Source: Thalia democratica (taxonomy: Eukaryota). From it: a stretch of 64,000 nucleotides of DNA. A model generated the notes under the pieces. It was not told where the DNA came from and made no database searches. It was given only the letters and a program-made list of their open reading frames with translations. The DNA is taken from the NCBI GenBank assembly GCA_965202585.1, contig OZ241827.1, forward strand, positions 18,972,001 to 19,036,000. Reading direction: 5' to 3'. Shown in pieces: positions 17,181 through 56,800 of this stretch (the first letter of the stretch is position 1; every line of letters starts with the position of its first letter). A program made the position numbers and the translations under genes.

Positions 17181-18529
17181 ACTCTATCAAGTAGATTTCA
17201 ACAAATTTAGTAAATAGTTCTTCTTTAAAAACTAGTAAACTGTTGCTCAAGGTAATAAAAAATTTCAGTTTACAAAAACTTTTAGCCGATTTAAAAAAAA
17301 GTTTTATAAAATAACTTTTACCAAAAATTTCAAGTACACACTTTTGTACAACTTTTAAACAGTAAATTTCAGCAAAACAACTTTAGCAAATTTAAATGCT
17401 TAATATGTTTTTTTTGGTTTTTGTTGTTTTATTGGTGGAATAAGTTGATACGTTATTATAGTTAGAAAAACAAAATAAAATATAACAGCTAGTCTTTTAG
17501 TCACTTGAATAGTTTTTTGTATCATTTTGGAAGTTTTTAGTAGACTGGTTATCGAGGCAGTCTAAAAATTCATGTCTTAGATCTATCTACTTGTAGTCTG
17601 AAATATATAATTACATAAAAAATGTTTAATTTAAAACAAACCTAGTTTTTTGCATATTTAAATTTGTCAGTACTTTATCTAAAGAAAGTTTTGACGCACA
17701 AGTATAAAGTACAAATATAAGTATAACATGACATATAAAAAATCGGTTTCTTTATACTAACTATAATTAAATCTGTTATTTTGAAAAAGTATTAAGCTTT
17801 TGATAGTAATTTCAAAAAGTAAAAAAAAAGATTTCATTAAAATTGTACAGTATAAGATTTTATCAAGTAGCAGTTAGTTTTCTTTAATTTGTCAGTACAA
17901 AGTTGTAAAATAGAAATTTGTGGCACATTTACTTGATTTTTTATTTCTACTTGATATGAATTTAGCAATAAAGATTTGTTCTATTGCTAATCACTACACA
18001 AACTATTTAAGAAATATGTATTTGAAAAATATCTATTGATAACAGGTGAAAAAAAAATATTATACTTAATTTTCAACAGACCTCAACAGTTTTATTTTTG
18101 TTCTGGTTTTGGTTTAAAATTGAAAATTTAAGTTTATGTTAAAATTAAAGATCTGAGTCATCTAACAAAAAGTTCATTGAATTTAAATACTGTGATAGAA
18201 AATTAACAAAAAATTATCGGCCAAAGACTACAAGCCTAAGCCTGGACTTTCGTATGCCATGAGACAAGCTTAACAACAATAAAAGAAAAATTTTATTTTT
18301 AAGCGTTATTTTTATACTTTTACTTTAGTTTAGTTTGAAAAAAAAATTTAGCTAAACAATATTTTTGATGTGTTATTAATTATACACTTATGCAACATTT
18401 GATACAAAATAACCTAAAAAGATAGGCAATGAAATAAAACAGCTCATTAAATTTAAAAAACTATGCAATAATTTATATAACAATTATTGATTCTTTTTTT
18501 AGATATATTTATATAATAAAAACAAATGT

Positions 18530-20455
18530 TTAAGCACTGCTTTGGTTTATTACCGGTTTCGGTGGGCCTTAGCCGACCTTTTCAAATAATTTCAAAACAG
18601 TAAATAACATTTAGACATTGGCAGTAATGTGAATCTGAACTCATTGATGCGTAAAAAATAAATAAACATTAACTATTCAAATTTTAATGAAAAATGCATA
18701 ATTAGGTGAACTAAATATTGGTATTAATTAATAAATAAAAATAAAAGAAATTAAAAAACTAAATGCAGTAATATAAACGGAAACACAACAAATTCTTAAC
18801 AAAATTCTGAAAAAACTAACGGATGATTAAGATGCTAAAAATATTTAAATTATTAGGTTTTAGACTCATTCCAATAGAATAATAAAAATTTGTTTCTGTG
18901 CCTGCAAGAGCTCATTACTTCTGATCTTTTGTTAATACAGTTCTTATCTGCTTGTAGGATCTTTAATGCTTCTTTCAAGCACAACCTGCACGTCTCGATT
19001 CTCGGTCTTGATTCATATTCTTTTTCCAGTATTGTCCAAGTCAATTCATAATTCTTATTTTCGTTCTTCAATGTGTGGATGTATTTTGATAGCTCAGTTG
19101 CTTGTTTGTATTGAATATAATTTTTATCTTCTGGGTTGCTATTTATTGTCGTTCTGTGGGTTGCCACTCTTTTTTTAAAATTGGTTGGCGCTTAGACCAA
19201 TATATGATTTAGTTGCATTGTCAGTTTTTACTGTGGCTTGGTGTATGACATTTTTTGCTCTACAGTTACCGCCTTTCAAAGGACATTTCTCTTTGTTTCT
19301 ACAGTTACATGTTTCATCTTCATCATTCTTGTTGCAGTTTGTGAGCTTCTTGTTATGATTCTTTATGATTGTCTCAATGTTTGGCAAACAGCTGTAACTT
19401 AATTTGATGTTGTTCTTATTTAAGTATTTTTTGAATTTACTGTCTACTCCGAAGTATTTGTTTATTATTTGGAGAAATTTCTTGCCAATGTTTGTTTTTA
19501 TTGATTTGCAGTATGGTGGATTAAACCATATTATTTTTCTTTTTCTTTTTCTAGGCTGTTTCTTTTCATCATCTTCATCTTTGAACTTTATTTTGTAATT
19601 ATAGCCACTTAACTTTATTGCGTCATTGTAATCTTTACTTATTTCATTGAATAGATTTTCATTGCTAGAATTTTTGGAAAGTCTTTCTTCTATCATTTTT
19701 GGGATTTGTTTCAGTATTGCTGGAGGGTGGTTGGACTTTGAATTAATATATATAATTTTGCTGTTTTCTTTTCTATATGGTTGGAATGTGTGGTTGTATA
19801 GATTGAAGCTTAAGTCTAGATAGTTAATTTTACGTGAAGGATTTTCAATATCTAACTTTATTCCCATTTCTTTTGATATGTTGTGCATGGATTTTTTAAT
19901 TTTCTCTATATCAACATTACTTTTGTTTTTTTCTATGACCATTAAGCCATCGTCGCGGTACAATCCTGTTGTTAGGTTTGGGAGCGCATTCCTGAGTTTA
20001 TGTAGTATATAGAGACCTACTAGTTCGCATATTTCCGCTCCATGCTTACCTCCCATGGTGATGTCGAAAAGTTCATTCTCTTCTGTGTTACTCTTTCTTT
20101 TTACCCATACTTCTTCTTTGTTATGTAATACAGATTTAGATGCGTTTAAGATGATCTTAATTTCTTGTTCGCTTACTTTTGTACTTTCTTTTGCAAAAGC
20201 TAAGGCTTTACTTAATAGCTTTTCTGATATAGATGGGTAAAACTCCACAATGTCAAACTTCATGAACTTGTATTTGTGTTTTTTTAGTTTTTTGTACCAG
20301 TTTAAGACTTCTTGGGAACTTCGCCACTGTAGGTATTTGGTTGATTTTCTTAATACATTGTTGATTCTGTCAATTATACATTTGCTAATTTGACCTATGT
20401 CTGAATAGCTAGGATTTATTAATCTTGTTTTGGGATTGCTGGCGAAATCCTTTTT
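18530..20455 (-). mobile_element. 5'-truncated Penelope-like retroelement (RT + GIY-YIG, Neptune-like), one frameshift
   Basis: The frame is open from ~20455 (KDFASNPKTRLINP...KFDIVEFYPSI...MGG...GLYRDDGL...WFNPPY...CNCRNKEKCPLKGGNC...SYIGL). The endonuclease continues in 18853-19167 (TELSKYIH...CRLCLKE...NKRSEVMSSCRHRNK) after a 1-nt shift at ~19175. Confidence 0.93.
18547..18589 (-). ncRNA. Minimal hammerhead-ribozyme-like motif at the PLE 3' end (U3-A8 variant)
   Basis: Minus strand reads ttat-TTGAAAA-ggtcggc(taag)gcccacc-GAAA-ccggt-a-ataa: stem I ttat/ataa, stem II with one mismatch, palindromic ACCGGT stem III and a GUA cleavage triplet. Confidence 0.6.
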
Positions 20456-20645
20456 GTAGATATATTTATATTTATTTATGTTTATAAGATTTTCTTTTGT
20501 AATAAGTTTTTTTTTAAATATTGATATAAATAAAACTCTACTAATAATGAAATTAAAAAGTATGATTTTAATAATATTAGTTTTAAGAAACTATGTTTTT
20601 GTAGTATATATTTTAAATGCTAGTTCGTTTGAATTGGCTCTAAAG

Positions 20646-21011: not shown

Positions 21012-21865
21012 ATGGATAATCGACCTCTAAACCTTTTTGATAGCTTATATGGATTTTTGAGTGAATTCTTTAAAGTTTGTGAAAGTTTTTAATAAAAAAA
21101 TTGATATATTACAAATTTTAATCATAAAATATATGAAGCTACTGTGACATAAATTTAAAATAATCATTTTCTTAAATGTAAAAAATTAACTACTAAGTTA
21201 ATTAAAAAATTTAGGTACTTGGTTCTAAAACGGATTATAGTGATTGTCAGAAGTGTTTTTACTACTGGCATACTCAATTACAAAATACCTCGTCTGTTGA
21301 CGAAATGCTATCTTTTGAAACTTACACAAGCTGGTTATATGAGTCGACCATTAAGAAGCTCAATGAAAGAAAAGAAATAAATGATGGGAAGCTCAAAGTA
21401 ATTAATGAAAGTTTTGTAAGTCTGTACGAAATAAGAGGTATGCGTGAAGAGATATTGCTAACAAATAATCAAATAATTTTGGACCAGTATATTGAGACGA
21501 AGAGTGAGTTAGAAGACAGAAGCAATAAGTGGTTGAAGAAAGCAAAAGAAATCATACAAGAAAACGAGACAATACAGAGGCTTCTAACAGAGTCCCAACA
21601 ATACCTGGAGATAGCTAAGGAAAAAATTGCAATGAGAAAACGTGATCTACAGTTTGGCCTGACTCTTGAAAGAATCCAGCAGTTTCATCAATTTCAAGCT
21701 GATCAATCAGCGGTTAGCGATCGATGCGAAGTGTGTCTTGGGGATATTGAAGTCGGAAGAAGAATGATGCGCCTGGATTGCAAACACGTGTTTTGTCAGG
21801 AATGCATTGAAAGATGGTTTGTCGACCACAAATCGTGCCCTAAGTACCGCCAATCGTTTGCTTAA
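21012..21865 (+). CDS. Coiled-coil + C-terminal RING finger protein (putative E3). Proposed exons 21012-21074 and 21215-21865 (237 aa)
   Basis: RING CEVC...DCKHVFCQECIERW...CPKY. The frame stays open upstream of the listed ATG back to a tttag|G acceptor at 21213-14. A phase-0 GTTTGT donor at 21075 joins MDNRPLNLFDSLYGFLSEFFK in frame. The exon model is inferred. Confidence 0.75.
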
Positions 21866-22137: not shown

Positions 22138-25100
22138 CAGTGGTCGGCAGGCAGTTGGTGGTCGCGGGCCAAATTTCAAGCTTACAAAGTCTTCGCGGGC
22201 CGCAGTTTTAGTTTTAGTGACGTTTGAATAATCTTTTCGTTTTAGTTTTAGTCACACTAGAGAAAAGTTTTAGCTATACATAATTTGACTATTTAAATTA
22301 AATTAAATAAAATTATAATAAAATTTACATTGACTAACATACTTAAGTGTTAATAAACTATGTACTTACATAAGCACTTACTAAGTTAAATTTAATACTT
22401 TTATAATTTTACATACAATTTAACTCTCTATAAAAACCAAACTTGAAAGACAATTTATTAGTTACTTTTATATATCTGTTATATTACCAACCCCTTTTTT
22501 CATATTTCTAAAAATATTAACTGCAAAAAAAAGTTTTTGCGTGTTAAATAGTTTACATTCAAAAAAAAATTTAGTAATTAGTTATTTAATAAAATTAATA
22601 CCTGTTTGTATTATAGAAAGCTAGAACAAATTTTTTAACATAATTAATTCAGAATACTTAAATAAAATATCTTATTAGTAACTAGTCTTTTACATGGTTG
22701 TCACTTAAAAAGCAAAAATGTCTGAGTTGTATCAAACCAGCCTAAGTTCATTAAAAGTTTAAAAAGCTAGTAAATCGTTGTAAATCAAGCTTAAGTACCT
22801 AGTAAAAATATCATCATCATTAAAAAGTACACAAAGTGTAAAAAACAAGAAAAAACTACAATTAGTAAACTACACTACAGTCATAAAAACTATTCTGGGA
22901 ATTCTAAGATTTATTTAAAGTGTTTGAAATAAAAGTTTCACACACATCTGAGTTTTCAAGCTTTTAAAATAGCCTGTTTGTGTAGCAACCCAGTTAAAAC
23001 AAAGTTCACAACATAAAGAAATAACGAAACTTATTAACAGTAAACAAATTACCTTCCAAAAAAAATATAATTCAGCTGGAATGGACAATTAACTTTCTTA
23101 AACATTTTTAACAAAAGTATAAAACTTAATTGAGTCATTAGCGAAGGGAAAAACCTCTTTTTTATTAAGCATTACAACAATTCTTTATCTGCAATAAAAA
23201 ATTAAAAATATTAGTTGTAAAATAAAAGACGAGCAACAAAAAAAAAACGTTAGTTAGGAGTTATTGCGAGAAACGATAAAAAAACAAATCACCAAAGTCA
23301 GTTCCAACAAAGCACATGATTATCTTCAGTAACTACAGAATTATCAAAAAAAAGTTGATAAGGCAAGTTATAAAGTAGCAAAATTTGTTATTAATAATAA
23401 GATACCGTTTATAATTGAAAACTTTTTTAAAGAATTTTTGTTGGCAGTAATGAAAAACTTTTGTTAATTTCTTCAATGACAACAAAAAGTCCTATTTAGG
23501 AAATGCATTGAGGTTATAAAGTCGCATAAATCAAATTATGACTTTAATCAATATGTTGAGATGAGAGCACTGATAGAAAAACTATTGCTCATCTGAGAAT
23601 TTTTATTAGAGATGTTTTTTTAACTTTTACACTTTAGTATGATTTCTTCATTTAGTGCAAACACGAAGCACAACAATCGGTGAAATTTTACAAGTAAAGG
23701 TGCAATGCACCAAAAGTTTTTAGAAGTACAATTCCTTCTTTTATTTTTAGTATAAAGTTTAATTAAAGTTTAAAAAGTGTCTTATAAAGTATATCAATAT
23801 TAAAAAAACACTGTTAAGCTACTTTAGTATATTTTTTAATAAAGAAATGTTTATTTGCTAAATTTTTTGTGTCAAATCGAAATTTCACTACTTTACATGT
23901 AAAAATTGTTTGAAACTCCAGACTTTTTCAAAAATTCTCAAATTCAAGTTTTTTTCCAAAATTTTTTAGCATAAATTTTCAAGTTCAAAGCTTGAACTTG
24001 ATATATTATAACATATATTATAACTGAAACTAACACTTTGGGTTGAGCAAAACTTACATCATTAGTTTAATTTGCAACTCTTTTAAGCAAAAAAGCCAGC
24101 CTGAATTAACAAAAACATTCCGGATATTTTGTATACAAAAAACAATTCTAGTCAAAAACTTATAAAATGATTTAGTTGGCCTGAGATTTGAAGTCTTCAA
24201 ATAGTGATAGTCTGAGAGTGTGTCAATGATTATAAACTATCCCTAAGTCTAGTTTATATTAAATAGGTAGCTCCAAAAAACAGAAAATGTGTGTATTGAT
24301 ATGCAAAGCATAAATGTTAACTTAGTTTGACAAAATCAATGTTTGAAAAATGAAAATGTATACCTAACAAAAACTATATTAGTTTATGTCATAAATATTG
24401 TTTTAATTGTGTCTGTACAAATTTAGATATTACATGTAGAAAAAACAAACTTAGAAAATTATGCATAAACTAAACTTAAACTAACTAAAGTATTTTATAA
24501 AAAGTGGTTTAAAATATGAGCATTTTTTTAAGTTTGTGTGCATATAAGTTAGTTTTTGTGCAAAGAAAACTTCTAAAAAATTAAAATGTGTCAAAACAAA
24601 ACTTAAATAAACCTTTTTTTTTTCTTATTACTATGTTATTTTAAATGTTTTTACACTAAAACATAAAATTTACAAATAAAAAATATATAAAAGAAACTTA
24701 GGTAAAAAAAATATTGGAAAGAATATATAAGCTATTAAAAAATGACACTTTATTTAATTACTGTGCATTGCTTTTGTACAAAATGGAAAACATTTGCATT
24801 TATTTATTTGATAAATAGGTATTATATAACTAACTTATTAAATTCAAGCACTCTTTTTTCAGATAACTACTTGCTGTTGTAAAAAAGAAGTTATTATGAA
24901 ACTCAGAAAAATATCCTGTTAGAATGCTAATCTGTCTTTTTCACATTTTTAAATTAAAGTAGTAACTTCTTCTAATTATTTTTAAATGTTTTACAGAGAC
25001 TTAAAACCAAACTAAACAAATTAAATCGAATTACCGAAAAAAAAATTACTTGAAATATATTTTTGCTCAGCGGGCCACTTTTACATGCTCGCGGGCCACA

Positions 25101-25212
25101 AAATTTTCTTTCGCGGGCCGCATTCCATTCAAAAAAATAACGTGCTCGCGGGCCGCAGATTTACCCTTCGCGGGCCGCAATTGGCCCGCGGGCCGCAGTT
25201 TGCCGACCTCTT
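22138..25212 (+). mobile_element. Non-autonomous hAT (Buster-type) element, copy 1, with decayed transposase N-terminus
   Basis: Left TIR cagtggtcggcag, right ...tttgccgacctct, subterminal gcgggcc arrays. Relic QLEWTINF...IKHY (~23073) and ASYKVAKFVINNKIPF...KEFLL (~23363). Colinear with 41864-45122. Confidence 0.88.
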
Positions 25213-29580: not shown

Positions 29581-32319
29581 ATATTTTCTAATTATCGAAT
29601 AATGTACTACAAGGTAAAGAAAATCAACAGTCAGAAAATTCACTAAGACACTAAGAAAAACACTAAGATCTAAAAATTTTATAAATTGAGTATTGGAATG
29701 TTTGTAATATTTATTTAACAAGCAAACTTAAGTGAAATAAACTTAACAGACAATGATTCTTAAGGTTGAGTGAGGTAAGTATATGAGATGGTAAATGAAA
29801 AAATATTCTCAAAATTGTTTTTCTGCCAAATGATTCTTCAAATTCATCTCTACATTGCTTTACTGTTGAAAAGTCTGGTTTAAAAGAACCTGGCATTAAA
29901 GACAGCCATTTTGTTGTGCGAGAAGAAAGAATTAGTTTGAATTTATAAGTAAAATTTGAATTAACTATTATAGAAGTTAATGTGACTTTTTGAATATAGA
30001 GATGTTCAGTAAAATATCTTCTTAATATTCTTCGGACAAATAAAAATATTAAAAAGAACTGATAAATATTTATTTTGTAATAAGAAAAACATTTCTATTA
30101 GCAAATGCAGATGTATTATGAAAGGCTTTCTAGGTTTGAAATATTTGCTGTTAAAGGTGTGTTTAGCAAGTTTTTAGGTTTGTAATATAGAACATGAAAT
30201 AGTAAATTTCTATACTGCACAAACGAGATCATGTGAATGTTACTAGTTAGAAACAGTAGGTAATAACAAGATTTAACTTAAAAAAAGTTCATTACTCAGG
30301 TGGGCAAGCCATTTAGACTGAATCTTAAGATCAGAATCAATACATACAATAAGAAACAGGTCTTTTTTCTTCCCACTTAAAACCAAATACTGTTTTGTGA
30401 TGCAGTGAAATGACCAGCTATTGTAGTCAGCTGTTTAAAACCTTTGAAATTAATTTATAACAATTAATATTTGGAGATGTCTAGCAGACAGACAAAAGTA
30501 AAAATTGAATAATTGTTTAGCGATACGCTCTAAACTAATTGGCATTTAAGTGATATTTTTATTATATCAAAAATGAATTATCATAAATAAAAAGTTAATA
30601 AGCTTGATACATACTAAAGTAAAGTAGGTTTTATAGTGAAATTGAGGTTTTTATTAACAAATAAGTCTTAAAAAAGTTTAAATTATACGGTCAGGGAAAT
30701 ATAGGTTTAAAAAACTTTTTGCAACAACATTTGTGCTAAGAGAAAATGTGTAAAACTAAGTTAGTATCACAATTGTATCAACCTACTTGAAAACTTATAA
30801 CAAACTTGTTTATCTTTATTTTAAACTATTAAAATTTTTATAATAGACCTTTTAGGAATGCTTTTTTACATTTTTTGACTTTTTTTTGGTTCGAATAATA
30901 GTCTTTTAAATTTAAGTACTCAAGAACCATAAATTTAAAAGTTCTATAAATATTAATAGAGACCAGAGTTGCGTATTAATTTAAAAAAATATAAGGTTTA
31001 AATAATAACAATAAACGTTTGTGTCATGCTTAAGTACCGTTTTGCAATATCTTTAAATCGATAGAAGGTAATGATTATCTTATAAATAACAATTATATTT
31101 TTAGATTAAAAAAGCTTTGTTTATGCTAATAAAAACGTACTATTCTCATTAAATTAAAATGACAATTTGGGATTTGGTAAAGCTAGTACTTAGATTAACT
31201 TTTTTGTTTGATAAAACTTAATTCATTAACAACAAATAATCTAATTATAATTACTAATTATGCTTTTTATAAAATTAATATATAGTAGTAGTATCTTAAA
31301 AATATGTTCCTCGGTACTAAATAAGATATTGTACTTGACGTAAAGATATCACCTTACAGAATAAAACAATTTTTTATCATTTTACACTAGAAGACAGCTA
31401 ACATCAATTTATATTTAACTGAGATAACAACATTATCAGTTCACTTTAATAATTTGTTTTAATTAGTATTTTTAAACACTGTTGTAAATGTTAAGATCAT
31501 GTTTATTTTCTTAACTTTTACATTATTGAATTAATCAAGTTTTTTTGTTTTTTATCTAAATATTTTTAATTCGATAAAACTTGAAATTTAGTGCGTACAT
31601 TGAAAGTGTTATTTGCTTATACCTATGCGTATAAGTTATCGAATTTAACTATGTATTTATTAGTGAACATAAATTTGACTTTGGCAAATTAAATAAAACT
31701 AACAAATTATCGATAGTTTTTAACGATGTACAGTTTATACAAAGAATTTTTCGTGCTAAATTAAATAATTTTAAATTAGAATAACACAATCAACGTCTCA
31801 TAAAATTACAAAAATAAGTAAATACTTAATTATTATAAAAACATGAGATTAACTTTAAACTGCTCAATTACCATCAAATACTTTATACGAATTTAGGGTT
31901 GTCTTTTTAGTTGTGTAAAAGGATTTAAAACTTCAAAAAAAATCTGAAGTACTACGTCTATAGAAAACACAAGGATTTATATATGTTTTAGTCAAAAAAA
32001 CAAAGAAGCTTAACACAAATTGAAGAAATTAAAATTAAGCATGTTTCGGAACTTTTAATTTATTTTCAAAAATAAATCTGATTTTAATCATTACTCTTCT
32101 GGGTAAAATTATAATATGATTTTAAATACTTGTTAATTAAACACAACAAATATTATAATGCAAGTGCGAAGCTAGATTTCGCTTTATGATTAATTATCTG
32201 AAGTTTAGTTTGAATAATAGTTACAAGAATTTTGTATGGGGTATATCTATCAGTTGTAACTTCTACTGCTTCTAAAATAACCACATGTGACAGACTGTAA
32301 TTGTATTTTGTCAAAATAT

Positions 32320-32490
32320 GGTATCCATCAATTGCAAATACTTTGTTGCCTAAAGTAACTAATGAAAGACGAACTCTTGCCTCCACCATATCAGGAAAAT
32401 AATTTTATTTTTTATCGTGATAATCATGCACTTCGACTGATCTTAAATGATACATCTGATTTACTTTGCCACCTAAAACAATATTTTTAC
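32320..32490 (-). pseudogene. Kelch-repeat gene fragment
   Basis: KNIVLGGKVNQMYHLRSVEVHDYHDKK*NYFPDMVEARVRLSLVTLGNKVFAIDGY is a Kelch GG...SVE.YD....W...M...R pattern, with TAA at the conserved Trp. Confidence 0.75.
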
Positions 32491-32805
32491 CAAAAAATTA
32501 AAATTTTAATTAATTCAAAAATCTAGTATTATAACAATTTCTCGTGCAATAAGTTTGATATGCCATACTTTACAGTAATTGTAAAGTACCTTATTTCTTT
32601 TGTGCAAGTATTGTGGATTTTTTTATAAACACAAAATACTAAATAGTCGTATATACTACCGGAAATTTTTATAACGATTTAAATAAAAAAATACTCTTTT
32701 GATGCGTATTTGTAAATCCATAAAAAATAAGCAAACTAGTTGAAAGTTGTTAAATTAGAGAAAAATTTGCTAAAAACCCGATATTTACAGTTCTAGGTTA
32801 TTAGT

Positions 32806-33173
32806 GGTTACATGACAATTCAAATTCGGACAACTTAAATTCCGACAACTCAATTTATTAAAAAACAAATTATAAGACTATATCTTAATAAGTTTTACAA
32901 ATTTGAAAAAAAAATATGTAGATCTTATGAATATCTACAAGCCAATTTTTTTCTTTTTTGCAAAATCTTAATTATTTTATAACAAATATTAAATTTAAAA
33001 ACAATATATATGTTTTTAACTTTATTTAAGCCATATTATGTTTTGCCAAAAGAAAAAATGACTGGTAGGTATTAATAGGACCTACATAAGTACTTTTTAT
33101 ATTTGACAAATACAAACTACTTTTTTTAGTGTATTTATGGCAAAATTATCCGAATTTTAATAGTCGTGCACCT
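32806..33173 (+). mobile_element. MITE family B (MULE-like, ~28-bp TIR, 9-bp TSD)
   Basis: TIRs ggttacatgacaattcaaattcggacaa / rc ggtgcacgactattaaaattcggataa. Flanks gttattagt/cttattagt (8/9). Confidence 0.75.
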
Positions 33174-34796
33174 CTTATTAGTAAAATAAAGTCCTTTTCA
33201 AGATATGCGTAACTTAAACACGAATATGTTTCAACTAGGCAAGAGTCACAGCTAGTTTAAACTTTTGTTTAGGATTTTTAAAACTTAAGATGACTCGTTA
33301 GAATTTTTATTGCAAAGCTTTAGCAAATTTGGATTATATATACTTAATCTATGCTTAAATTTGATTTTTTTACTTTAATTTAAAACGTAGAGATTTTAAT
33401 TTGAGATACGAACAATCAGGCAAAAATATATGAGGCATTTCGATTTAAATTGTTTTTGATCTACTACAACTTGAAAAAAAATATTTATTACTAGAAAAAA
33501 CTTTTTGAAAGGGAACTTAATCTAAAGAAGACTCTAAAAATCTCAAGTTTACATAAAGCTTCAGTTAAATCATATATACTTTTTAGAAACTTAAGCAAAC
33601 TTTTAAATTTACTCCTTTTTTCTAACCTGTTCTAGTTTTAAATATTACTCGGATTAATGAAAACTTGTAATGTAAGATTCTTTGATTTTACTTGTTCTAT
33701 CTCATCAGCTAACATCATTTTATGAAAACCAGAAAAATTTACTTTTAACATTTAAGTTATTTTTATCATCAGATAGTTTTATTTTATATAAATTTGAATT
33801 TTTTTAAATTTAACTTTATTAAAAGCATTGTAGTAAAAAGACATAACGAAAAAAATTATTTAGTGTTTGTTTTAATCTTTAGTGTTTAATTACAAATCTT
33901 ATTTTAGTGTAATACTAATCCACGCTCAGTTTTAACAGTTTTAAAATTTTTTAGTTCCATTTCTGATGATAGATAAGCTTAGATTAACATAGGTTTTACT
34001 AAAAATCATACTTTTAATGTAGACCATCATACCATATAACATTTTAGAGTATATTACGCATTAGTTAAATATTTTCGTAAACTTAGAGCTGTTCAAAAAA
34101 ATAACTTAAAGATAGTCTTGTATGTTATGTTTATGCCTTAATATTGACTAAAAATTTCACGTATTATTGCTTCCATGTGTAAAAACATTTTTAGACATAC
34201 TAAGTATAGTTAGCAATTTTTAACTATCGATTTAATTGATCTCATTAGGTATTTGTGCCAAAAATATTTTATAGTCAAAGCTTTGAGCTTAACACATTCA
34301 GAAAAACAATGCGAAGCTCAAAAAGCTAGGGGTAATAACATTTGTAGTTGTGTCAAATATGTACAGACCAAAATAGCTAAGCATTTACCACGAAATAATC
34401 AAAAAAATGCATAAAATATCATATTGCTGCACACTAAACATTATTGCCCAAAATTATTAATTTCCAGACTAAACTTTCGATCTTTTATACGTCTTATTAT
34501 GTTTTATACTCAATACTAAAATAAGAAAATCATCAAGTTGTTTAATATATTTTATTAAAAAGATAACTTGTTCATTTGTATAGCCGAAATAAACAAAAAA
34601 TAAATTAAGTATCTTAAAATGCATAAAATTATTTATAGTTCGCAATAGTTTGTTTACAGCATATAAAAATGATATTATATATTTCTAAAGATTTAAAGTT
34701 AAAACGTTACTAATTTATATCAAGAAAGCTTCATTAGAAAACTTATTTTTTGGAAATCAAAAAATAATAAACAGTTTAATAATCTTCTCCATCAGA

Positions 34797-35696
34797 CTAG
34801 GGCTCGTCACCAACTGAATTGAGTCTTGTTTTCTGAAACCGATTTCGCATGTTTCGTGACGTCATATGAACTCTGTCGGGCGTGTAAGTAATTGGATCTC
34901 TAACATCTACTTCCCTGTGCCTGGCAGCTGCTTCCCTGTTTTGCCTTATCAGACTTCCTAGTCGTGCTCGTACTAATGCAATTTCTGCTTGGTTTTCCAA
35001 ATTTTCATTTGAATTGAGTCTTGTTCTCGGAAACCGATTTCGCATGTTTCGTGATGTCATTCGCATGTCGGGTATGTAAATGATTTGATGTCTGGCACCT
35101 GCTTCCCTTCGCCTGACATCTGCTTCCCTGTGTCCCCTTACCTGCATTCCTAGCTGTGCTAATATATTTACTGCTTGGGTATCCAAATTTCCATTTAAAA
35201 TATTTTCGCTCGATAACAAGTCGCTTGGTACCATTACTCTCTGTCTAATAACTTCGGTAGGTTGTGTTCGGACTCTATCGGGCGTATAGGTAATTGGATC
35301 TCTGACATCTGCTTCCCTGCGCCTCGCATCTGACTCCCTAAGTTCCCTTTGCAGAATTTCTGCTTGTGCTAATGCATTTTCTGCTTGGGTTACCATATTT
35401 TCATTCGAATTATCTCCGCTCGAAAAAGTTTCGATTGGTAATGGTATTCTCTGTCTAATGTCATCCAACAAATGCGACGGCATTGCTGTAGTAGGTGTAA
35501 CACTTACTGCGGTTGGTGGATTGACTATTATCCTATCCGGATCATTCAAAACAGGCACTGGCGGGTTGCTTTGCAATGGTGGTGCGTCTGCCTCTTGTAC
35601 ATTATTTTGTAGTTGACTGGTCGATCCACTTTGGCCTTCTGAAGATATAGCTCGTGCAGCTTCCGGTTGCTCGTTTGGGTTGGCGTTGTTACTCAT
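34797..35696 (-). CDS. 299-aa orphan protein with ~65-70-aa internal repeats; Arg/Pro/Asn-rich with only one Lys
   Basis: Long single-exon ORF, markedly GC-richer than its surroundings. Repeats (R/H)RE(A/V)DVRDPITYTPDRV and MTSRNMRNRFxxTRLNS. A TATA-like TATTTATAAA lies ~45 nt upstream. Confidence 0.75.
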   Translation of the reverse strand: MSNNANPNEQPEAARAISSEGQSGSTSQLQNNVQEADAPPLQSNPPVPVLNDPDRIIVNPPTAVSVTPTTAMPSHLLDDIRQRIPLPIETFSSGDNSNENMVTQAENALAQAEILQRELRESDARRREADVRDPITYTPDRVRTQPTEVIRQRVMVPSDLLSSENILNGNLDTQAVNILAQLGMQVRGHREADVRRREAGARHQIIYIPDMRMTSRNMRNRFPRTRLNSNENLENQAEIALVRARLGSLIRQNREAAARHREVDVRDPITYTPDRVHMTSRNMRNRFQKTRLNSVGDEP

Positions 35697-38600
35697 TTTG
35701 TTTACAACCTGTTTGTTTGTTTTTTGTTTGTTAAAAGTGTTTATAAATATAGTTTCAAAATCTGTTTAATCCATGTAAAAATTTAATTCAGTTGAAATTA
35801 AATGACTTGTTTGTTCTTAAAATACTAGAATAACAATTTGAAAAATGATGAAGTGTGAAAAAAAAACATGATGTAAACTTTGTATAAGACTTCTTCTTTA
35901 TATCAAATTTAAAAATTCGGCATTTTTCAAATAAAGAAGTTATTCTGATTTTTTTTTTTTTCTAAAAACTGTTAAAATATATATCTTTTTAGTCCTATAA
36001 TGTTATACAACATTTTGTTACACATATTTTTTATAAAGTTGTAGTTTATAAAATGTAGAATAAACATATTTGTATAATATGTATCAATAAATAATATATA
36101 TCAAAATATTTCTATAGCATATCTTTATATTTTGTTCGGTATATCTGTAAATTATATAGAATAAAAAACTAAATGCTTTAACTTCTTTGCACCAACTAAG
36201 TTATTTAAGTAAAAGTTTGTTTTAGTCAAATGTGGGTTAACTTTTTATATTCACTTTTAACAAATATCAAAGTATAATAAAACTATAGGTCTATAGCTTA
36301 AAACATAACTTTTACACCTGCATTAAAATATAAATTTTGAAATTACAATTTTAGAATTTATTTAAAAATTAGATTAATATATTCACCGTTCAACATTTAA
36401 AATATAAGATTCAAAATTCAACGAAGAATTTCCTTTGCAACACAAACCTCTTGAGTAAACTTTTAAATGTTCATTTACTTAATTTACTAACAATAATATT
36501 AAGAATAAGTCTATAACATCTCTTTTAAAAAATTATATTAAAATTATTCAGTTTATTTTATCATAAATATTCCGGTGTAGTGGTTTTCGAGTGTTTTTTT
36601 TTGATTTAGAAAATTTTATTAGCTTAGGTATATTTCCCTTATCCATTAATTTTATAAGATAGCAATTTTTTACTGTTGCAAAATAGTCATTACAAGAAAT
36701 TGATGAAAACGTTTTTTTAGAAGATAAGTATTAGTTTACATGCATAGCAATAAAAAAACTGAACTATGTATTGGGTATTCTGTTTTTATGTATATTTTTT
36801 ATATTCTGGAGTTTATCTAAACATGTTAAGCAATGTTATTCAGCTTAAGATAAGAAGTGAATCTCTTGAACACGATTAAGAATTACGCATAAAAAATCTT
36901 TTTGCATGACACATAAGGTTTTATCTACCGCCATGAAACGAACAGCAAACGGAAAATTAAACTTAAAATAAGTTAAGAGGAACAAGTTTATAAAGTATTT
37001 AGTGTTACGTCAGATTAGTAATTTAGTATTCTACCAAATTTCGTTTAAAGCATTTAGCATAAAAAGTTTGTTTTATTTTGACTAGATGGTCGGTATTCAC
37101 AACCTTTACGTTCGGTAGGTAACTTATTTTCCTTATTTTATTATTTTATAAAACTATCTATTTTTTCTCTTTTCAATTTTCTTTAACTTTTATTTTACTA
37201 TCGTGCAAAAAAGATTCACACTTAATAAACCTTTTCCCATTTAAATAAATAAGCTAATTACATATGTTAATAAATTAGCTTTGATTTCTTACTAATTGTT
37301 CAAAAGTTGAATGTTGAATTTACAATTGTGTAGTGTATACCTGAACAAAAAACAAAGTAAGTTTGTTGGTTTACTTCACAAAATTGTTAGATAGTTGTTA
37401 ATTTAGCCAATTGTTTAAGTTGTAAATTATTTTAATACCAGAGTGACTTGGTATTTGTATAACCATACACTTCTTAAGATCATGTTCCAAAATACAAATG
37501 AAAGTATTTGTAATTAGGTTAAGAATGTGCAATATTCTTCAAGTTTATAATTTCATTATCATAAAATAATCTGCAGGGTAGCTTTAAATTAAAATACAAA
37601 GAATTTTCCCAAGTCTATCTCCCCTTTTCTTATTTAAATCAATCTAGTTAAATCTGTAGAATATATGTTTTGTTTTACAAGTTAATAGTTATGCATTTTT
37701 TAAGTTTTATACCTTGATCAAATATTTAATTCTTGTAAATTATTTGTTTTACAAATTACCAATGTGACTGTTTAGCAGAGGATCATTAAAAATTCATTAA
37801 AAATTGAAAACATTTTTAGATATTTAGCTCACAATTTTTGTTGGAAAACTAAAAGTTTTTTTTGGTTAGTTTTTAATCTATTAAAATTATTATTTTAAAT
37901 AATTTTTAGCCCTCAGTACTTAGTTATAACTTTGAAATAAATTCCACATGTGTTTAGCTGTTTTTTATTAATAAAATAATGAAACTTTTATTGACATATT
38001 ACTATTTCTTTATTAATTTTAGAGTAGGGTTTCATAATGAGGGCAGTGAAGTATCTTAAGGGTTGAGTTTAGCTTTTAGCAGGACAACAAAAAAGGCGAA
38101 AAGTAACTAAATGACTTACTGACTAGTAAAAGATAGATAATGAAATTGGGGGATGTTTAATACTAAATTTATTTACAGGGCTACTTAATGATTATATTTT
38201 TACCTACAAGCACAATTACACTTAATTTTACTTAGCTTATTTAAAATAACATTTTTATTTTCCATTAAATTCCTAGAATACTTATTTTTTCAATGCAACA
38301 GGTATACTATAAATAAAGTTAAGATAGGTAGCTAAACTAAACTAAAAAAAAAAAGTTTATTCAATGCTGCTGTTCACCAAAATGTTTTATCATTATTACT
38401 CATTTATGTTGAGTTATATTTTCAAAAAATCAGGATAAAGTTCAAATTTAAAACTTTTATTTCAAAAAACTATATCAAAATGTTGTTTTTGTTTTTACAC
38501 ATAAGTTTTCTTATCATGAGTTAAATCAGTATTTGGAGCTCTGTCCTGATATTTTACTAATACTTTTTTATTACTAAAGCTGACAAAAAGTTTTACCTTA

Positions 38601-38909: not shown

Positions 38910-39140
38910 ATGATCGAAGTTGTATGCATCCATCGTCTTGGCTTTAAAATCCACGTCGAAGTAAGCGAACATCACACTGTTGGCGACCTCAAGAAGATTA
39001 TTGAAGCTAAGACTACAGTCAGTCAGGACTTGATCGTTTTAAGGATGTTGGGCGTAATCTTAAAAAATCACATACAATTAGATGATTATGAAATAGACGA
39101 TGGAACAAGTCTTGATATGTTGTATTTAGGACGTAATTAG
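38910..39140 (+). CDS. UBL5-like: Divergent UBL5/Hub1-like ubiquitin-fold protein (intronless paralog)
   Basis: Gap-free by-eye alignment to human UBL5 (MIEVVC..RLG.K...TxGDLKK...IVL...DYEIxDG), about 35/73 identities. AATAAA at ~39170. Confidence 0.85.
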   Translation: MIEVVCIHRLGFKIHVEVSEHHTVGDLKKIIEAKTTVSQDLIVLRMLGVILKNHIQLDDYEIDDGTSLDMLYLGRN

Positions 39141-40029: not shown

Positions 40030-40281
40030 AATAACTAATCAGGATATCTTCTTTGAAGCAATTTTTGGCTAAAATAAGTTTCAAAGTATACTAATTGTTA
40101 TTAATTTTTGAATATCTTAAAAAATGTTTAAAATTTTACAAAAAGAAAAAAAAAATGGCTTGTAGATATTTATAAGACCAACATAAATTTTTTCTTTGAA
40201 ATTTATAAACTTTCTGAGATATAATCTTTCAATTATTTTTTTAGAATTTGAGTTGTCGGAATTTGAATTGTCATGTAACCC
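40030..40281 (-). mobile_element. MITE family B, truncated copy inverted relative to 32806-33173
   Basis: The rc reads gggttacatgacaattcaaattccgacaactc...atatctacaagcca, matching the 32806 copy. Confidence 0.75.
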
Positions 40282-41863: not shown

Positions 41864-44800
41864 CAGGGGTCGGCAGGCAGTTGGTGGTCGCGGGCCAAAT
41901 TTCAAGTTTACAAAGTCTTCGCGGGCCGCAGTTTTAGTTTTAGTGACATTGGAATAATATTTTGGTTTTAGTTTTAGTCACAATTAAAGAAAGGTTTTAC
42001 TTTTTTTTCACCTTATTATTTTAAATGACTTTTAGCTATACATGGAATGCCTATTTAAATTAATATTTATTATAATAGAATTTACATTGACTAATATACT
42101 TTAGTGTTAATAAACTATGTACTTTTAAAGCACTTAATAAGTTAAACTTAATACTTTTGTATTTTTACTTACAACCTAACTATCTATAAAAACCTAACTT
42201 TAAAGACAATTTATGGTTACTTTTATACATTTGTTATATTATCAACCCTTTTTTCATATTTCTAAGAATATTTACTTCAAAAGAAGTTTTTGCGTCATAA
42301 ATAATTTACACTCATTAAAAAATTTATTAATTAGTTAACTTAATAAAATTAATACCTGTTTGTATTCCAGAAAGCTAAAACAAACTCTTTAACATAATTT
42401 ATTCTCGATAAATTTTAATAAAATATCTTATTAGTAATTAGTATTTTACATGGTTGCCACTTAAAAAGCAGAAAATGTCTGAGTTGTATCAAACCAGCCA
42501 AAGTTTATTAAAAGTTTAAAAAGCTAAAAAATAGTTGTTAATCAAGCTTAAGTACCTAGTTAAAATATCATCATTATCAAAAAGTACACAAAATGTAAGA
42601 AAACAAGAAAAATTACAATTAGTAAACTACACTACAGTCATAAAAACTATTTTGAGAATTGAAAGATTTCTTTAAATTGTTTGAAATAAAAGTTTCACAC
42701 ACACCTGAGTTTTCAACTTTTAAAATAGCCTGTTTGTGTAGCAACCCAGTTAAAATAAAGTTCACAACATAAAGAAATAACGAAGGTTATTAATAGTATA
42801 TAAATTACATGCCAAAAATATATAAGTCAGCTGGAATGGAAAATTAAGATTCTTAAACAAATTTAACAAAAGTATAAAATTCTATTGAGTCATTAGCGAA
42901 GTAGAAAAACTTATTTTTTATTAAGCATTTTAGCAACTCTTTATCTGAAATAGGAATATTGCATTTAAAAATAGTAATTGTAAAATATGAGACGAGCTAC
43001 AAGAATAAAAAAACGTTAGTTAGGAGTTATTGCGAGAAACGATAAGAAAAAAAAAACACCAAAGTCAGTTCTCCAACAAAGCACATGATTATCTTCAGTA
43101 AATACAGAATGATCAGAAAAATTGTAAAGGCAAGGTATAAAGTAGCAAAACTTATTACTTAAAATGAGATGCTTTTTATAATTGAAAACTTTTCTAAATA
43201 ATTTATGTTGGCGGTAATGAAAAGCTTTTGTTTATTTCTTCAATGACAACTAGAAGTCATGTTTAGGAAATGCGTTAAGGTTATAGCCGCATAAATCAAA
43301 TTAGTACTTTAATCAATCTGTTAACATGAGACTACTTATAAAAAAAAACTATTGCTCATCTGAGAGTTTTTATTAGAGATGTTTTTACTAACTTTGACAT
43401 TTTAGTAGAGTTTCTTGGTTTAGTTTCAAAGCGATGCACAACAAATGGTGAAATTTTACAAATAAAGGTGCAATGTACCAAAACAAAGTTTTTGGAACTA
43501 CAATTCCTTCTTTTATTTTAGTATAAAGTTTAATTAAAGTTGAATAAAATGTCTTAACAAATATATCAATATTAGAAAATACTGTTAAGCTACTTTTATA
43601 TATTTTATAATAGAAAAATATTTATTTGGTAAGTTTTTTGTGTCAAATCGAAATTTTATTTCTTTACATGTAAAAATTGTTTGAAATTCCAGGTTTTTCA
43701 AAAATTCTTAAACTAAAGTTTTTTTTCAGAATTTTTAAGCATAAATTTTCAAATTCAAAACTTTTCCAAGATTCAAGTTTTTTGGCTGATTGTTTACACT
43801 TAAATGTACACAACAATATAAATATTATTTTGAATTTTATTAGCTGCAAGACTTAAAATTTAACATTCATTATAGCTCAAACTAACACTGTTGATTGAGC
43901 AAAACATACATCATAAGTTTAATCTGCACTTTTTCAAGCAAAGAAGCCAGCCTGAGTCAACAAAAACATTCCTGATAGTTTTGTATACAAAAAGCAATTA
44001 TAGCCAAAACCTTAAAAAGTGACTTAGTTGGCCTGAGATTTAAAGTCTTCAAATAGTGATAGTCTGAGTGTTTGGCAATTTTTAGTTGTTTATTTGCTTG
44101 AACTTAAACTATTTTGATTAACAATGTACAAACTTGATAAACTTACCATCCCTAAATCTAGTTTATGTTAAATAGGTAGCTTCAAAAAACAGCAGTTGTG
44201 TATATTGATATGCGAGGCATAAAAATTAACTAAGTTTGACAAAAAAAAAATGTTTGAAAAATTAAATTGTATACCTAACAAAAATATACTTCAAAAAAAA
44301 TGTGTGTGTACAATTTAGATATTACATGTACAAAAACAATGTTAGAAAATTACGCATAAACTAAACTTTAACTAACTAAAGTATTAAATAAAAAGTGGTT
44401 TAAAATATGAGCATCTTTTTAAGTTGGTGTACATAGAAATTAATTTAAAGTGCAAAGAAAACTTTTAAAGAATTAAAATGTGTCAAAACTAAAATCAAAT
44501 AAACCTTATTTTTTATTACTATGTTATGCTAAATGCTTTTACCCTAAAATGTAACACTTACAAATAAAAAATCTATAAAGGAAATTTTAAAGGAAATTTA
44601 GGTATAAAAAATATTGAAAAAGAATATCTAAGCTATAAAGAAATGACACTTTAGTTAATTACTGAGCATTACTTTTGTACAAAATGGAAAACATTTGCAT
44701 TTAGTTTGTTTAATAGATAGGTATTATATATCTAAATTACTAAATCCAAGCACTCTTTACACTCTTTTTTCAGATAATTACTTGCTGTTGTAAAAAAGAA

Positions 44801-53824: not shown

Positions 53825-56800
53825 GTTTGTAATCACTTAAAACATCTTAAATGGCTGTAGTAGCTTTTCTATCTACTAATTTTTCTGATGATGTTTTTAC
53901 TTTGTAAATAAGTTTTGATTAGTGTTATACGAAAATATACTAAAGTTAGAAACATTTTAAAACCATTTTATCTGGTACTTTTACAGGGAAGTTTATAATT
54001 AACAAACGTTATGTACTTAAATGATAGAAACTTGAATCAGTTTATAAAAGAATTTTCTGGTCCTCAAAACTCTTTGCGCAAGCTTTGTAATGAAGAAAAA
54101 GAAAAGTGTTGTAAAGAAATTGAAAATTTAGAGAAAAATTTTGAAGAAAGTAAAGAAGATTTGATAACGGAAGTGAAGGAAATTTTTCAGTATAACACTT
54201 CAAACTTCAAAACTCCCTCTCCAAACTTCAAGTACAAACTCGAACTAATGAATAATGATGATCCAGATTATATGATTTTGAAAAGCTCGCTTGATATAGA
54301 TTCTGAATTCACTACCTATTCAGTGATTGCATCAAAATATTATTTAAATGCACTTGAACAGAAGAAACTTGTGTACAAAATTTACAGAGTAAAAACAATT
54401 AATAAAAATATAACTGAGAATAGAAACTTTGATACTTCTAGTACACTCTTTCTTCATGGAACAAAAGGGTCATGTGTAGAAGGTATATTGAAAGAAGGAT
54501 TTAGACCATCACAATCTGGAAGTTATGGCCCAGGAGTGTATTTAACTAACAGTGTTTTTTATGCTTTCAAATATGGTAATAGTTTTGTAAAAGATGAGGA
54601 AACTCCTAAAAAATTAAACTACTTGTTTGTAAATAAAGTTGAAATTACTATTTCAAATGCAGACTCTGCAACTTCTAGTAAAGACAAGCAGGGTACAAAT
54701 TTAAGTAAAAGTAATTTTTCATTCGCATCTCCTAAAACTACTGCTTATTATGAAAATGGAAAAAAAAGGACTACTTCTATAAGTTCAACAAGTCGACAAT
54801 CAGAAAAAAGCTTAGAAGACTATGCTAATAATAAACCTTTCTTTAAGTTTGTTAGTAGTTTTCCCAAAAAATCAACAAGTTTCAAAGATTCACCTCAGGA
54901 TACGTTTGACAGTCAGAAGAACAAAATTCTAGAAGGTACATTTAACTATGATTTATTTAAAACAAAAATAGCTGTAGCCCATCATGACTTAGTTACTCCT
55001 GCATATCTGATAGAAGTTGAAGTTAAACAAAATGAAGAAGAAATTGTTAAAAATGTACTATACAGCACATTAAGTGTGCATAGCTTTAGTAAACAAGCTA
55101 ATACAAAAATCGAACCTAAAAATCTGTCTAAAAATTCAGAAGATAACAATTGTTTGAAAACAGCAAGCGACTATACTGCAGAACAGTTTTATTCAGAGTT
55201 AGAGTCGGAAATAAATCTAAACCAAAGAGCAAAAGTTGACTTTATAAAATCTCAATTTGATCACAAAGTTGTTTCACTAACTCAACAATTATCTTTTGAA
55301 GTAAGCAGTCTTTCGAAAACTACTAGTGATAGTTCTATGATGTATAAGACTGAACTATTAAAATCTACAGATGAAGATTATCAGTTTATCTTACGTTCGA
55401 TAAATGATCAGAAAACTAAAGTTAACTCTAAAGCTCTAAATGTATTTAGAATTATTAATCTTGATCAAAATCAACTTCTAACAATTCAAAATACTGAACT
55501 TATTCTTCACGGAGTTAAATGTGGCAAAGTTATGAATGTACTTAAGTCTGGTTATCCAAAAGATTGGGAATCTTATAATAAACAGTGCAAAAAAGATTGC
55601 TTTGGTGAAGACATTTTTCCCTCAAACAGCTGCTCTTGTAGAGCGTCTAACATGTTAACAAAAGAAATATCGAAAGGCACTTGTTACTCTAAAGTAGACG
55701 GTGAAATAAAAAAATTGTCTTTTGTGTTTGTGATAGGCTACGGAAAAGCAAATACAAATAATGATTTCGATGTTGAAAAAACTTGTTTATCTGGAGGCGG
55801 AAACCAGAAAAGACCTACAGATGTTGTTTCAGACAGCAGAGGTTGTTCAATTCTTTCTGGTTCTGAAAACGAGATCCAAGAACTCACAGTAGGGATGGTA
55901 CCTGCATATTTGATTATATTTGAAGCTTAATATATAAAAATAGTCGATACATTTTTGTTTTTGAACAATGTTTAATTGGTTATCAATTGTCTAACAGAGT
56001 AGCATTTTCTTAAAATAGTAAATTTTCAAGCGTTGCAAGTACACTAGATAGTTAAAGTTCTTTTTTTAACGAAAAAAAGCTAGACTTTTTATATTTTAAC
56101 TTTTTTTTTAAAGGATAATGGAGTTTTATTTAACAAGTATAGGTTCTCAATTATAAATTTAGTTTTACATAATTCATTTGGCTTAAAGATTGTTCAATTT
56201 ATACTTGTTTATTTAATTTTTTTTATTTCTTAAGTTTTGTTGAACAAATTTCTTTCAACTAACTTTTTACAGCTTTCTTTACATATAATAAACTGAATTT
56301 ACTTACCTAAAATATCTTAAAGTTTGTGAAATCGTTTTGTCGTTGTTTCTTAGTTCCTAAATTACGTAGTATAAATTATTTTTCATGCAATAGAATAAAC
56401 TTTCTTTAAAAATAACATTTAGAGTTTTTTTTTAATAAGTGTTGTAAAATCTCAATGTTGTTCTTACAAATAAAGAAACCTTTTTAGGTTATATGTAAAA
56501 ATTGATAAACCGTTTTTTTAAAATATTAGTTTTTGAAAAAAATATTTCTTTACTCAGAAATTTAATTAAATAATTATTAATTTCTATGTTTTCAAAAAAG
56601 TGGTTATACTTATTCTTGTTTCTAAATTTGTAGTTTTGTTTGTAAAAATTAATTAGTATACTTTTACTACGTAAGTACAGTGTAAATCTAATATAACATA
56701 TTTAAAATTATATTAAAGACCACTGAATACTGAACAACAAAATTTGATGCTTTTAAGCATTAAAGAATATACAAACAGAAAGATATCTTTAATGGAAAAC

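Follow-up and report, generated by a model that had tools for sequence, protein, structure and literature searches.

Why does a protein encoded under an AT bias that promotes lysine contain almost no lysine, and is this absence a matter of composition or of selection? The question is raised by a 64,000-nucleotide stretch of the genome of Thalia democratica (GenBank assembly GCA_965202585.1, contig OZ241827.1, positions 18,972,001 to 19,036,000 of the forward strand), which is referred to here as the window and is numbered from its first letter. Its minus strand carries an open reading frame (ORF) for a repeat protein of 299 amino acids (aa) with a single lysine near its C-terminus. We found this ORF to be one member of a multigene family in which lysine is excluded by selection, beyond mutational or compositional expectation.

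A Lysine-Free Protein and Its Family

34797-35696, minus strand: single-exon ORF, the window's family member; 299 aa, ATG start, TAG stop
34830-34832, minus strand: sole lysine codon (AAA, residue 289); 16 of 17 paralogs have arginine in this column, and the proline next to it is replaced by glutamine

As the original prediction had noted, the ORF encodes one lysine (residue 289), no cysteine or tryptophan, and abundant arginine (38 residues). Among the arginine codons, 25 of 38 (AGA or AGG) would become a lysine codon through a single G-to-A transition. Residues 1-288, or 96% of the protein, are free of lysine, which upholds the claim of a 288-residue lysine desert and qualifies the protein on both counts of the operational definition of Szulc et al., as far as that definition is quoted in PMC13696103. 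Five other ORFs in the window comprise 8.6-15.4% lysine and scarce arginine, in agreement with the claim that neighboring ORFs are lysine-rich, and the GC content of the ORF is 44% relative to ~24% in its flanks and a window average of ~25%. Translated in its other frames, this DNA would yield many lysines (27-28 in the remaining two sense frames, 4-7 in the antisense ones), and A-runs cross codon boundaries; avoidance of A-runs at the nucleotide level was therefore rejected as an explanation.

The protein had been described as an orphan, which did not hold. A six-frame protein search of the 802-Mb genome returned 49 matches and a profile search returned 52, together marking ~26 loci. These are clustered at C1:93.75-94.78 Mb, C2:18.95-19.17 Mb (the window's own cluster), and C8:23.07-24.23 Mb, with further copies at C2:68.2 Mb, at C1:37.9 Mb, and on four small contigs. 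Intact ORFs of 150-300 aa were identified at 17 of the ~26 loci; they share the N-terminus MSGN.NPNEQ.. and, with the exception of the window copy, the C-terminus ..FPRTRLNSVGDEPYSD(G/E)E.. Beyond this genome, 7 matches were recovered from 5.8 billion clusters and 14 from 1.84 billion representatives, one of the latter (P0015) being an unrelated repeat protein. All seven homologs whose contigs were looked up came from marine metagenome assemblies, and three of the record names state Tara Oceans or PRJEB4352. The metagenome homologs are 33-40% identical or more at the protein level, and their contigs are collinear with the genomic flanks at 65-91% nucleotide identity and therefore represent DNA of related species. 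Foreign origin of the family was rejected because the GC content at its third codon positions (0.29-0.40) matches that of the other single-exon genes in the window.

Screening against Pfam yielded no family for the window ORF at E<=0.01, and at E<=1 the 22 members examined returned scattered single matches, none of them consistent. Neither the family profile nor single sequences matched anything significant among PDB sequences, and a protein-language-model atlas searched with an intact paralog returned no usable match. The family is lineage-restricted, undescribed, and lacking a recognizable domain.

The exclusion of lysine extends across the family. The 17 intact paralogs, totaling 3,638 residues, comprise 420 arginines and 2 tryptophans, no cysteine, and only 3 lysines, all of which are singletons found in one sequence each. 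Likewise, 13 metagenome homologs (2,219 residues) comprise 8 lysines and 1 cysteine, and the two most divergent have no lysine in 338 and 256 residues. Lysine avoidance is thus conserved among homologs, on which the original prediction had staked its reading, and broken or frameshifted copies of the family gain lysine. The lysine-free stretch of the window ORF is far beyond chance and is a property common to the whole family.

Evidence for Selection Against Lysine and Cysteine

Codon parsimony on a tree built from the 17 coding sequences placed 478 nonsynonymous and 130 synonymous changes, and we computed the expected derived residues from one-step mutational neighbors under two mutation models. 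Derived lysine was observed 3 times relative to 31-43 expected (P = 8e-11 to 5e-16), and derived cysteine was never observed relative to 7.6 expected. Derived tryptophan was observed once relative to about 4 expected, histidine was not depleted (14 relative to about 19), and most other derived residues fell within roughly two-fold of expectation. The deficit in lysine persisted when the analysis was confined to single-nucleotide changes (3 relative to 18-25 expected; P = 9e-6 to 2e-8) or to columns occupied in at least 14 of the 17 sequences (3 relative to 18-25), and when both filters were combined (3 relative to 9-13; P = 0.013 to 0.0007).

This residue-specific deficit is set in otherwise permissive protein evolution. 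The median pairwise Nei-Gojobori ratio of nonsynonymous to synonymous substitution rates (dN/dS) was 0.71, with an interquartile range of 0.63-0.85; in several comparisons involving the window copy it was about 1. Nearly any residue in these proteins changes; replacements to lysine are removed by selection, and replacements to cysteine apparently are as well.

The reading frame is also maintained. The 608 sense changes reconstructed on the tree should have been accompanied by 24-30 nonsense changes, and yet 17 of the ~26 copies remain open. Insertions and deletions scored against the window copy preserve the frame in 21 of 27 coding-sequence cases but in 81 of 316 flanking ones (Fisher P = 1e-7). 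These observations together argue that selection acts on a translated product, and we regard the window ORF, on the evidence of its sequence and that of its relatives, as a real protein-coding member of the family.

We considered whether the family might instead comprise no functional gene, such that its composition is an accident, the ORF is borne by a transposable element, or the copies are decaying pseudogenes. A dN/dS near 0.7, coding conservation that does not exceed that of the flanks, the premature stop of the window copy (see below), and sequencing records that are all genomic DNA would each fit this explanation. However, the open frames and in-frame bias described above, the absence of transposable-element hallmarks in copies that are clustered rather than dispersed, and the intact lysine-free homologs of other species do not. 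In addition, exclusion of lysine specifically requires selection at the level of translation, which counts against a non-functional family. We therefore consider this explanation very improbable.

Two short elements flank the coding sequence and are shared among family members.

35709-35712, minus strand: ‘acag’, a splice-acceptor-like motif 12-17 nt 5' of the ATG, kept in most paralogs and metagenome homologs
34650-34715, minus strand: conserved 3'-flank block, ..TGACG(C/T)TTTAACTT..ATCTTTAGAAATATATAATATCATTTTTAT.., about 65-150 nt past the stop

The upstream motif may represent the acceptor of an intron in the 5' untranslated region or a trans-splice acceptor. AAA codons are present between this motif and the ATG, unlike in the ORF, which fits the ATG as the true start. 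The downstream block is retained in metagenome homologs whose proteins are just 33-37% identical to that of the window, and it may be an element of the 3' untranslated region, perhaps with a regulatory or localization role. The block was also observed at equivalent places in L001, L034, and L050, and it can still be recognized in metagenome homologs whose DNA otherwise shares just about 65-70% identity with the copies of this genome.

Architecture of the Proteins

Family members begin with a disordered region rich in proline, serine, and asparagine, followed by one to three repeats of ~70 aa and a C-terminal module. Each repeat comprises a long helix rich in arginine, glutamate, alanine, and glutamine and a linker, PIT(Y/F)TP(D/G)R. 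The repeat sharing that had been pointed out in the window ORF was recovered at the residues concerned: IRQR at 80-83 and 150-153, DVRDPITYTPDRV at 130-142 and 264-276, and MTSRNMRNRF at 213-222 and 278-287, as was the contrast between FPRTRLNS (221-228) and FQKTRLNS (287-294).

An AlphaFold2 model built with a 22-sequence family alignment had a mean predicted local distance difference test score (pLDDT) of 55 and a predicted template modeling score of 0.23. It features three long predicted helices, one per repeat, with block-mean pLDDT of ~70-94 that is lower at the helix ends.

35301-35408, minus strand: predicted helix 1, aa 97-132; repeat core NEN..TQAENALAQAEILQRE.RE
35091-35207, minus strand: predicted helix 2, aa 164-202 (AlphaFold2)
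34899-35012, minus strand: predicted helix 3, aa 229-266; ‘short subfamily’ type (..VRARLGSLIRQ..), highest pLDDT

Outside of these helices the protein is predicted to be disordered, which bears out, at the level of a model, the suggestion of a largely disordered protein. No signal peptide or hydrophobic segment was detected in the window protein.

Conserved short motifs make up the C-terminal module of the family (..TP.R..MTSRNMRNRFPRTRLNSVGDEPYSD.E..). Invariant or near-invariant columns of the family fall mostly within this module, as N..R..F...RL.SVGD..YSD.E, which is preceded by TP.R in most members. Patterns in the module fit the consensus sites of CDK-type (TP.R), basophilic AGC-type (R.R..S followed by a hydrophobic residue), and CK2-type (SD.E) kinases.

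The prominence of arginine raises the possibility that arginine is needed and lysine is a poor substitute rather than harmful, such as if the Arg/Glu-rich helices were mixed-charge elements or bound nucleic acids or condensates. Arginine makes up 11.5% of family residues and is concentrated in the helices and tail, and the near-zero net charge, with arginine alternating with glutamate or aspartate, would suit such elements. However, arginine positions are not conserved. Codon parsimony places 46 replacements of arginine by 14 different residues, just 2 of them to lysine, the residue that is closest chemically and easiest to reach by mutation. Moreover, the arginine-poor N-terminal 96 residues are also free of lysine, and the exclusion of cysteine is left unexplained. 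Since arginine sites turn over freely and the arginine-poor N-terminus lacks lysine as well, a function specific to arginine appears unlikely.

A Mosaic and Truncated Copy

The original prediction interpreted the mosaic repeats of the window ORF as a product of recombination. In a sliding-window comparison, the mosaicism was traced to exchange between paralogs, with three source lineages represented along the gene.

35400-37050: 5' flank and N-terminal coding part; closest to the copies at C1:94.77 and C1:94.31 Mb (85-93% identity)
34950-35400: middle repeats; closest to the copy at C1:94.61 Mb (94-95% identity)
33600-35000: last repeat, tail, and 3' flank; closest to the ‘short’ subfamily (91-95% identity across the last repeat and tail and into the proximal 3' flank, 85-89% further downstream)
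35010-35060, minus strand: coding sequence of the tail module, internal copy (MTSRNMRNRFPRTRLNS); its 3' edge is the recombination junction where the L003-like middle meets the short-subfamily 3' part
34815-34865, minus strand: coding sequence of the tail module, terminal copy, sharing 94% identity with the internal one and having proline-to-glutamine and arginine-to-lysine changes
34776-34796, minus strand: residual in-frame tail, SDGEDY and TAA, matching the acidic family C-terminus YSD(G/E)E..; the profile match reads through one TAG

One junction, near 35010-35015, coincides with microhomology at an Asn-Ser codon pair and leaves the internal copy of the tail module. In the window copy a TAG replaces a conserved tyrosine codon seven codons ahead of the family stop, which deprives the protein of its last 7 residues and of the conserved acidic end. 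The family tail can still be read past the TAG, so the nonsense change looks recent. Splicing to downstream exons, which had been entertained, is not called for, since the family ends seven codons after the TAG and no downstream exon is needed. The sole lysine of the window copy sits in a tail motif that is otherwise near-invariant. Collectively, these features suggest that the window copy is probably under relaxed constraint and is probably a poor representative of its family.

At the scale of the genome, the family grows and decays through segmental duplication, unequal crossing-over, and gene conversion.

Possible Reasons for the Exclusion of Lysine and Cysteine

Lysine deserts are enriched among disordered proteins of the ubiquitin-proteasome system (UPS), where cysteine co-depletion has been noted and restored lysines can bring ubiquitylation and protein loss (PMC10169902; PMC13696103). 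By analogy, we tentatively favor the explanation that family members exclude lysine and cysteine so as to offer no acceptor for conjugation of ubiquitin or a ubiquitin-like modifier. A protein without acceptors for lysine-directed conjugation could persist despite being disordered, or could operate next to E3 ligases in the role of adaptor, regulator, or pseudo-substrate, with the conserved C-terminal module serving as a docking or regulatory piece. The specificity of NatA is such that a Met-Ser start is expected to be N-acetylated, and the N-terminus of these proteins is thus probably blocked, which would leave no primary amine. The role originally put forward, that of a ubiquitylation-resistant scaffold, adaptor, or decoy, would be compatible with this explanation.

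Comparison with known lysine deserts of the UPS, including those of San1, Slx5, Hrd1, VHL, UBQLN1/2, RAD23A, and BAG6 (PMC13696103, PMC10169902, PMC10665810), reveals both likenesses and differences. Like these proteins, family members have a long, continuous lysine-free stretch that is conserved among homologs in a largely disordered protein; cysteine is co-depleted as in UBQLN, and the presumed logic, lack of a lysine acceptor, is the same. Unlike them, family members carry no UPS domain (RING, UBL, UBA, BC-box, or other), and homology to these proteins was not detected; the desert spans the whole protein rather than one region, and the family is young, fast-evolving, and multi-copy, with the link to the UPS drawn by inference only.

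Lysine can also be absent from entire proteins. The small regulators p14ARF, p16INK4a, and HPV-58 E7 are naturally lysine-less, ARF is rich in arginine, and their turnover proceeds via N-terminal ubiquitylation. Family members resemble these regulators in having no or nearly no lysine in the whole protein and, as in ARF, abundant arginine. They differ in being repetitive, balanced between acidic and basic residues, and probably N-terminally acetylated, and no relation in sequence or fold was found. A third comparison is with the lysine-poor catalytic chains of AB toxins such as ricin A, cholera toxin A1, and pertussis S1 (PMC13696103). In these chains lysine is likewise selectively depleted while arginine is kept, which is read as escape from ubiquitin-dependent degradation, but they are folded, secreted, retro-translocating enzymes whereas the family has no signal peptide, enzyme fold, or sign of a toxin.

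Ubiquitin is not the only agent that acts on amines and thiols. The proteins might be free of nucleophiles as a defense against other chemistry, including quinone or aldehyde tanning, transglutaminase, lysyl oxidase, acetylation, or SUMOylation; for example, a glutamine-rich, lysine-free protein could be a one-sided transglutaminase substrate or remain soluble amid cross-linking. The two most nucleophilic side chains are those that are specifically absent, acetylation, which is likely at a Met-Ser N-terminus, would eliminate the final amine, and glutamine is common (19 of 299 residues in the window ORF). That avoidance of other lysine modifications is unexplored, according to a review (PMC13696103), also counts in favor of this alternative. 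On the other hand, an extracellular setting is unlikely given that no signal peptide or hydrophobic segment was found, and histidine is not depleted. We regard protection from such chemistry as possible, if unlikely.

Several observations weigh against the preferred explanation, that of an acceptor-free protein, or against the evidence on which it builds. Serine and threonine, which are also possible acceptors for ubiquitin, are abundant in the family protein. No UPS domain or motif (RING, U-box, HECT, UBL, UBA, UIM, BC-box, F-box) and no recognized degron was found in searches of Pfam and PDB, and the kinase sites read into the C-terminal module are pattern matches only. The parsimony analysis relies on an approximate mutation model, on repeats whose alignment is uncertain, and on a tree that gene conversion has blurred, and its most conservative subset yields a P of just 0.013 to 0.0007. 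The coding sequence of the family is conserved no more than its flanks, and constraint is accordingly weak except for the open frame, the exclusion of lysine and cysteine, and the termini. Three sequencing records containing the stretch are genomic DNA, with coding and intergenic sequence evenly covered, and exact-sequence look-ups of the window protein and one intact paralog returned no record. Lastly, both the premature TAG and the junction at ~35010 are taken from the assembly sequence alone.

The Duplicated Unit and Its Neighborhood

30516-37095, minus strand: segment duplicated together with the gene in many paralogous loci; a 6.6-kb unit with sharp shared ends

No long terminal repeats or terminal inverted repeats were detected between 29800 and 37800 of the window, and the 6.6-kb unit encodes no further conserved ORF. 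Together with the sharp shared ends, these observations point to segmental duplication rather than transposition. Identity as a gag or ORF1 protein of a transposable element, which the original prediction had named as a competing identification, was likewise rejected: the protein has no Pfam or PDB match, no terminal repeats surround the unit, and copies occur as clusters in a few regions. Within the unit, a 78-aa ORF (32153-32389, minus strand) encodes the Kelch-repeat-like string GNKVFAIDGY and may be a relic exon, and an element of ~330 bp at 32800-33130 resembles a miniature inverted-repeat transposable element (MITE), with many dispersed copies at ~79% identity.

A divergently oriented gene lies 3.2 kb from the lysine-free gene. 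This ORF (38910-39140, plus strand, 76 aa) encodes a UBL5-like protein that is 47% identical to the animal's canonical UBL5 (C7:2935698-2935913), has histidine in place of aspartate at position 22, and ends in LGRN; an inverted second copy of the MITE-like element lies beyond it, at 40067-40273. The proximity was originally thought to be meaningful, in which case the gene pair might be functionally linked and the lysine-free protein might be a partner or decoy of UBL5/Hub1 or of the UBL5-like paralog, its HIND-like helices binding the ubiquitin-like protein non-covalently. The HIND core, (L/M)RA.LGL.PLE, occurs in Snu66/SART1 and binds Hub1/UBL5. In T. democratica the SART1/Snu66 gene is located at C1:84573000-84595407 (L054, L055), and its HIND exon (..MRASLGLAPLEI..) is shorter than the human form.

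The divergent arrangement and its co-duplication at two other loci are consistent with a functional pair, as is the resemblance of RARLG in predicted helix 3, likewise a short amphipathic helix, to RASLG of the animal's own HIND exon. However, the likeness amounts to four of five residues (RA.LG) in a helix rich in arginine, alanine, and leucine, lacks the LGL.PLE continuation, and is confined to one subfamily; it is too short to count as HIND identity, and no sequence match to solved structures was found. In addition, the UBL5-like gene is present in exactly three copies (in the window, at C1:94780046, and at C1:94318527), which are 92-95% identical and belong to one segmental duplication. 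The two genes are thus adjacent at just 3 of the ~26 loci, reflecting a single event. Co-folding of aa 90-299 with the UBL5-like protein and with canonical UBL5 gave no answer (score 0.00, run with no controls) and so weighs neither way; the canonical chain used was one codon off, with an extra N-terminal asparagine and the last glutamine missing. Judging from its distribution among loci, the proximity is incidental, and partnership with UBL5 or its paralog is hardly credible.

The window also encodes a small RING-H2 protein in a single exon (21305-21865, plus strand, 186 aa) that belongs to a hugely amplified family, with at least 150 scored matches and about 2,000 candidates at first look. 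A tandem array at C10:25.05-25.13 Mb comprises at least 60 units spaced ~1.1 kb apart, the majority of which have an open frame of 180 aa.

In some places a RING copy is located no more than about 2 kb from a unit of the lysine-free family (C8:24161575, C65:37285); these copies also belong to one duplicated clade. Because the RING family is very large, this nearness is weak evidence of a connection. We nevertheless considered a bolder version of the acceptor-free explanation, in which the proteins, lacking both lysine and cysteine and blocked at the N-terminus, would be pseudo-substrates or adaptors that co-expanded with the amplified small RING E3 family. They would bind ligases by way of the conserved, phospho-regulated C-terminal module and escape being consumed, as part of an arms race, intragenomic or between host and parasite, that is still under way. 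In this specific form the explanation is quite unlikely.

Additional features of the window are largely repetitive. A mobile element of ~1.95 kb (18512-20458) that is very young and high in copy number, with dozens of copies across chromosomes at 98-100% identity, carries minus-strand ORFs at 18853-19167 and 19175-20263, the latter encoding 362 aa without a Pfam match. Two high-copy repeats were identified, one of about 3 kb at 22139-25212 with copies 93-97% identical, and one of at least 2.1 kb at 41865-44000+ with more than 30 copies that are 88-98% identical. A 639-aa ORF (54011-55930, plus strand) matches the PARP catalytic domain (E = 6.5e-9), and a reverse-transcriptase fragment (58144-59064, minus strand) was detected at E = 3.6e-5, below the Pfam cut-off.

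Implications for Lysine Deserts

According to a recent review (PMC13696103), it is still unresolved whether lysine deserts owe their form to selection or to composition and chance. The family described here amounts to a natural experiment on this question, in that it combines a lysine-promoting AT bias, many young paralogs, and near-neutral amino-acid evolution. Most of its arginine codons are one transition from a lysine codon, yet lysine, like cysteine, almost never appears. Ongoing residue-specific purifying selection can thereby be separated from inherited composition, and relaxed copies such as that of the window supply a ready comparison.

Lysine-desert and naturally lysine-less proteins are a known kind, and the value of the family is its unusually clean evolutionary evidence of selection against lysine. 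Should these proteins act alongside E3 ligases, the lysine-desert repertoire would gain a class that is domain-less and lineage-specific; if co-expansion with the RING family were also true, they would provide the first residue-specific filter against ubiquitin acceptors visible in a freely evolving multigene family. If they have no such role beside the ligases, selection would have had another reason to rid these proteins of amines and thiols.

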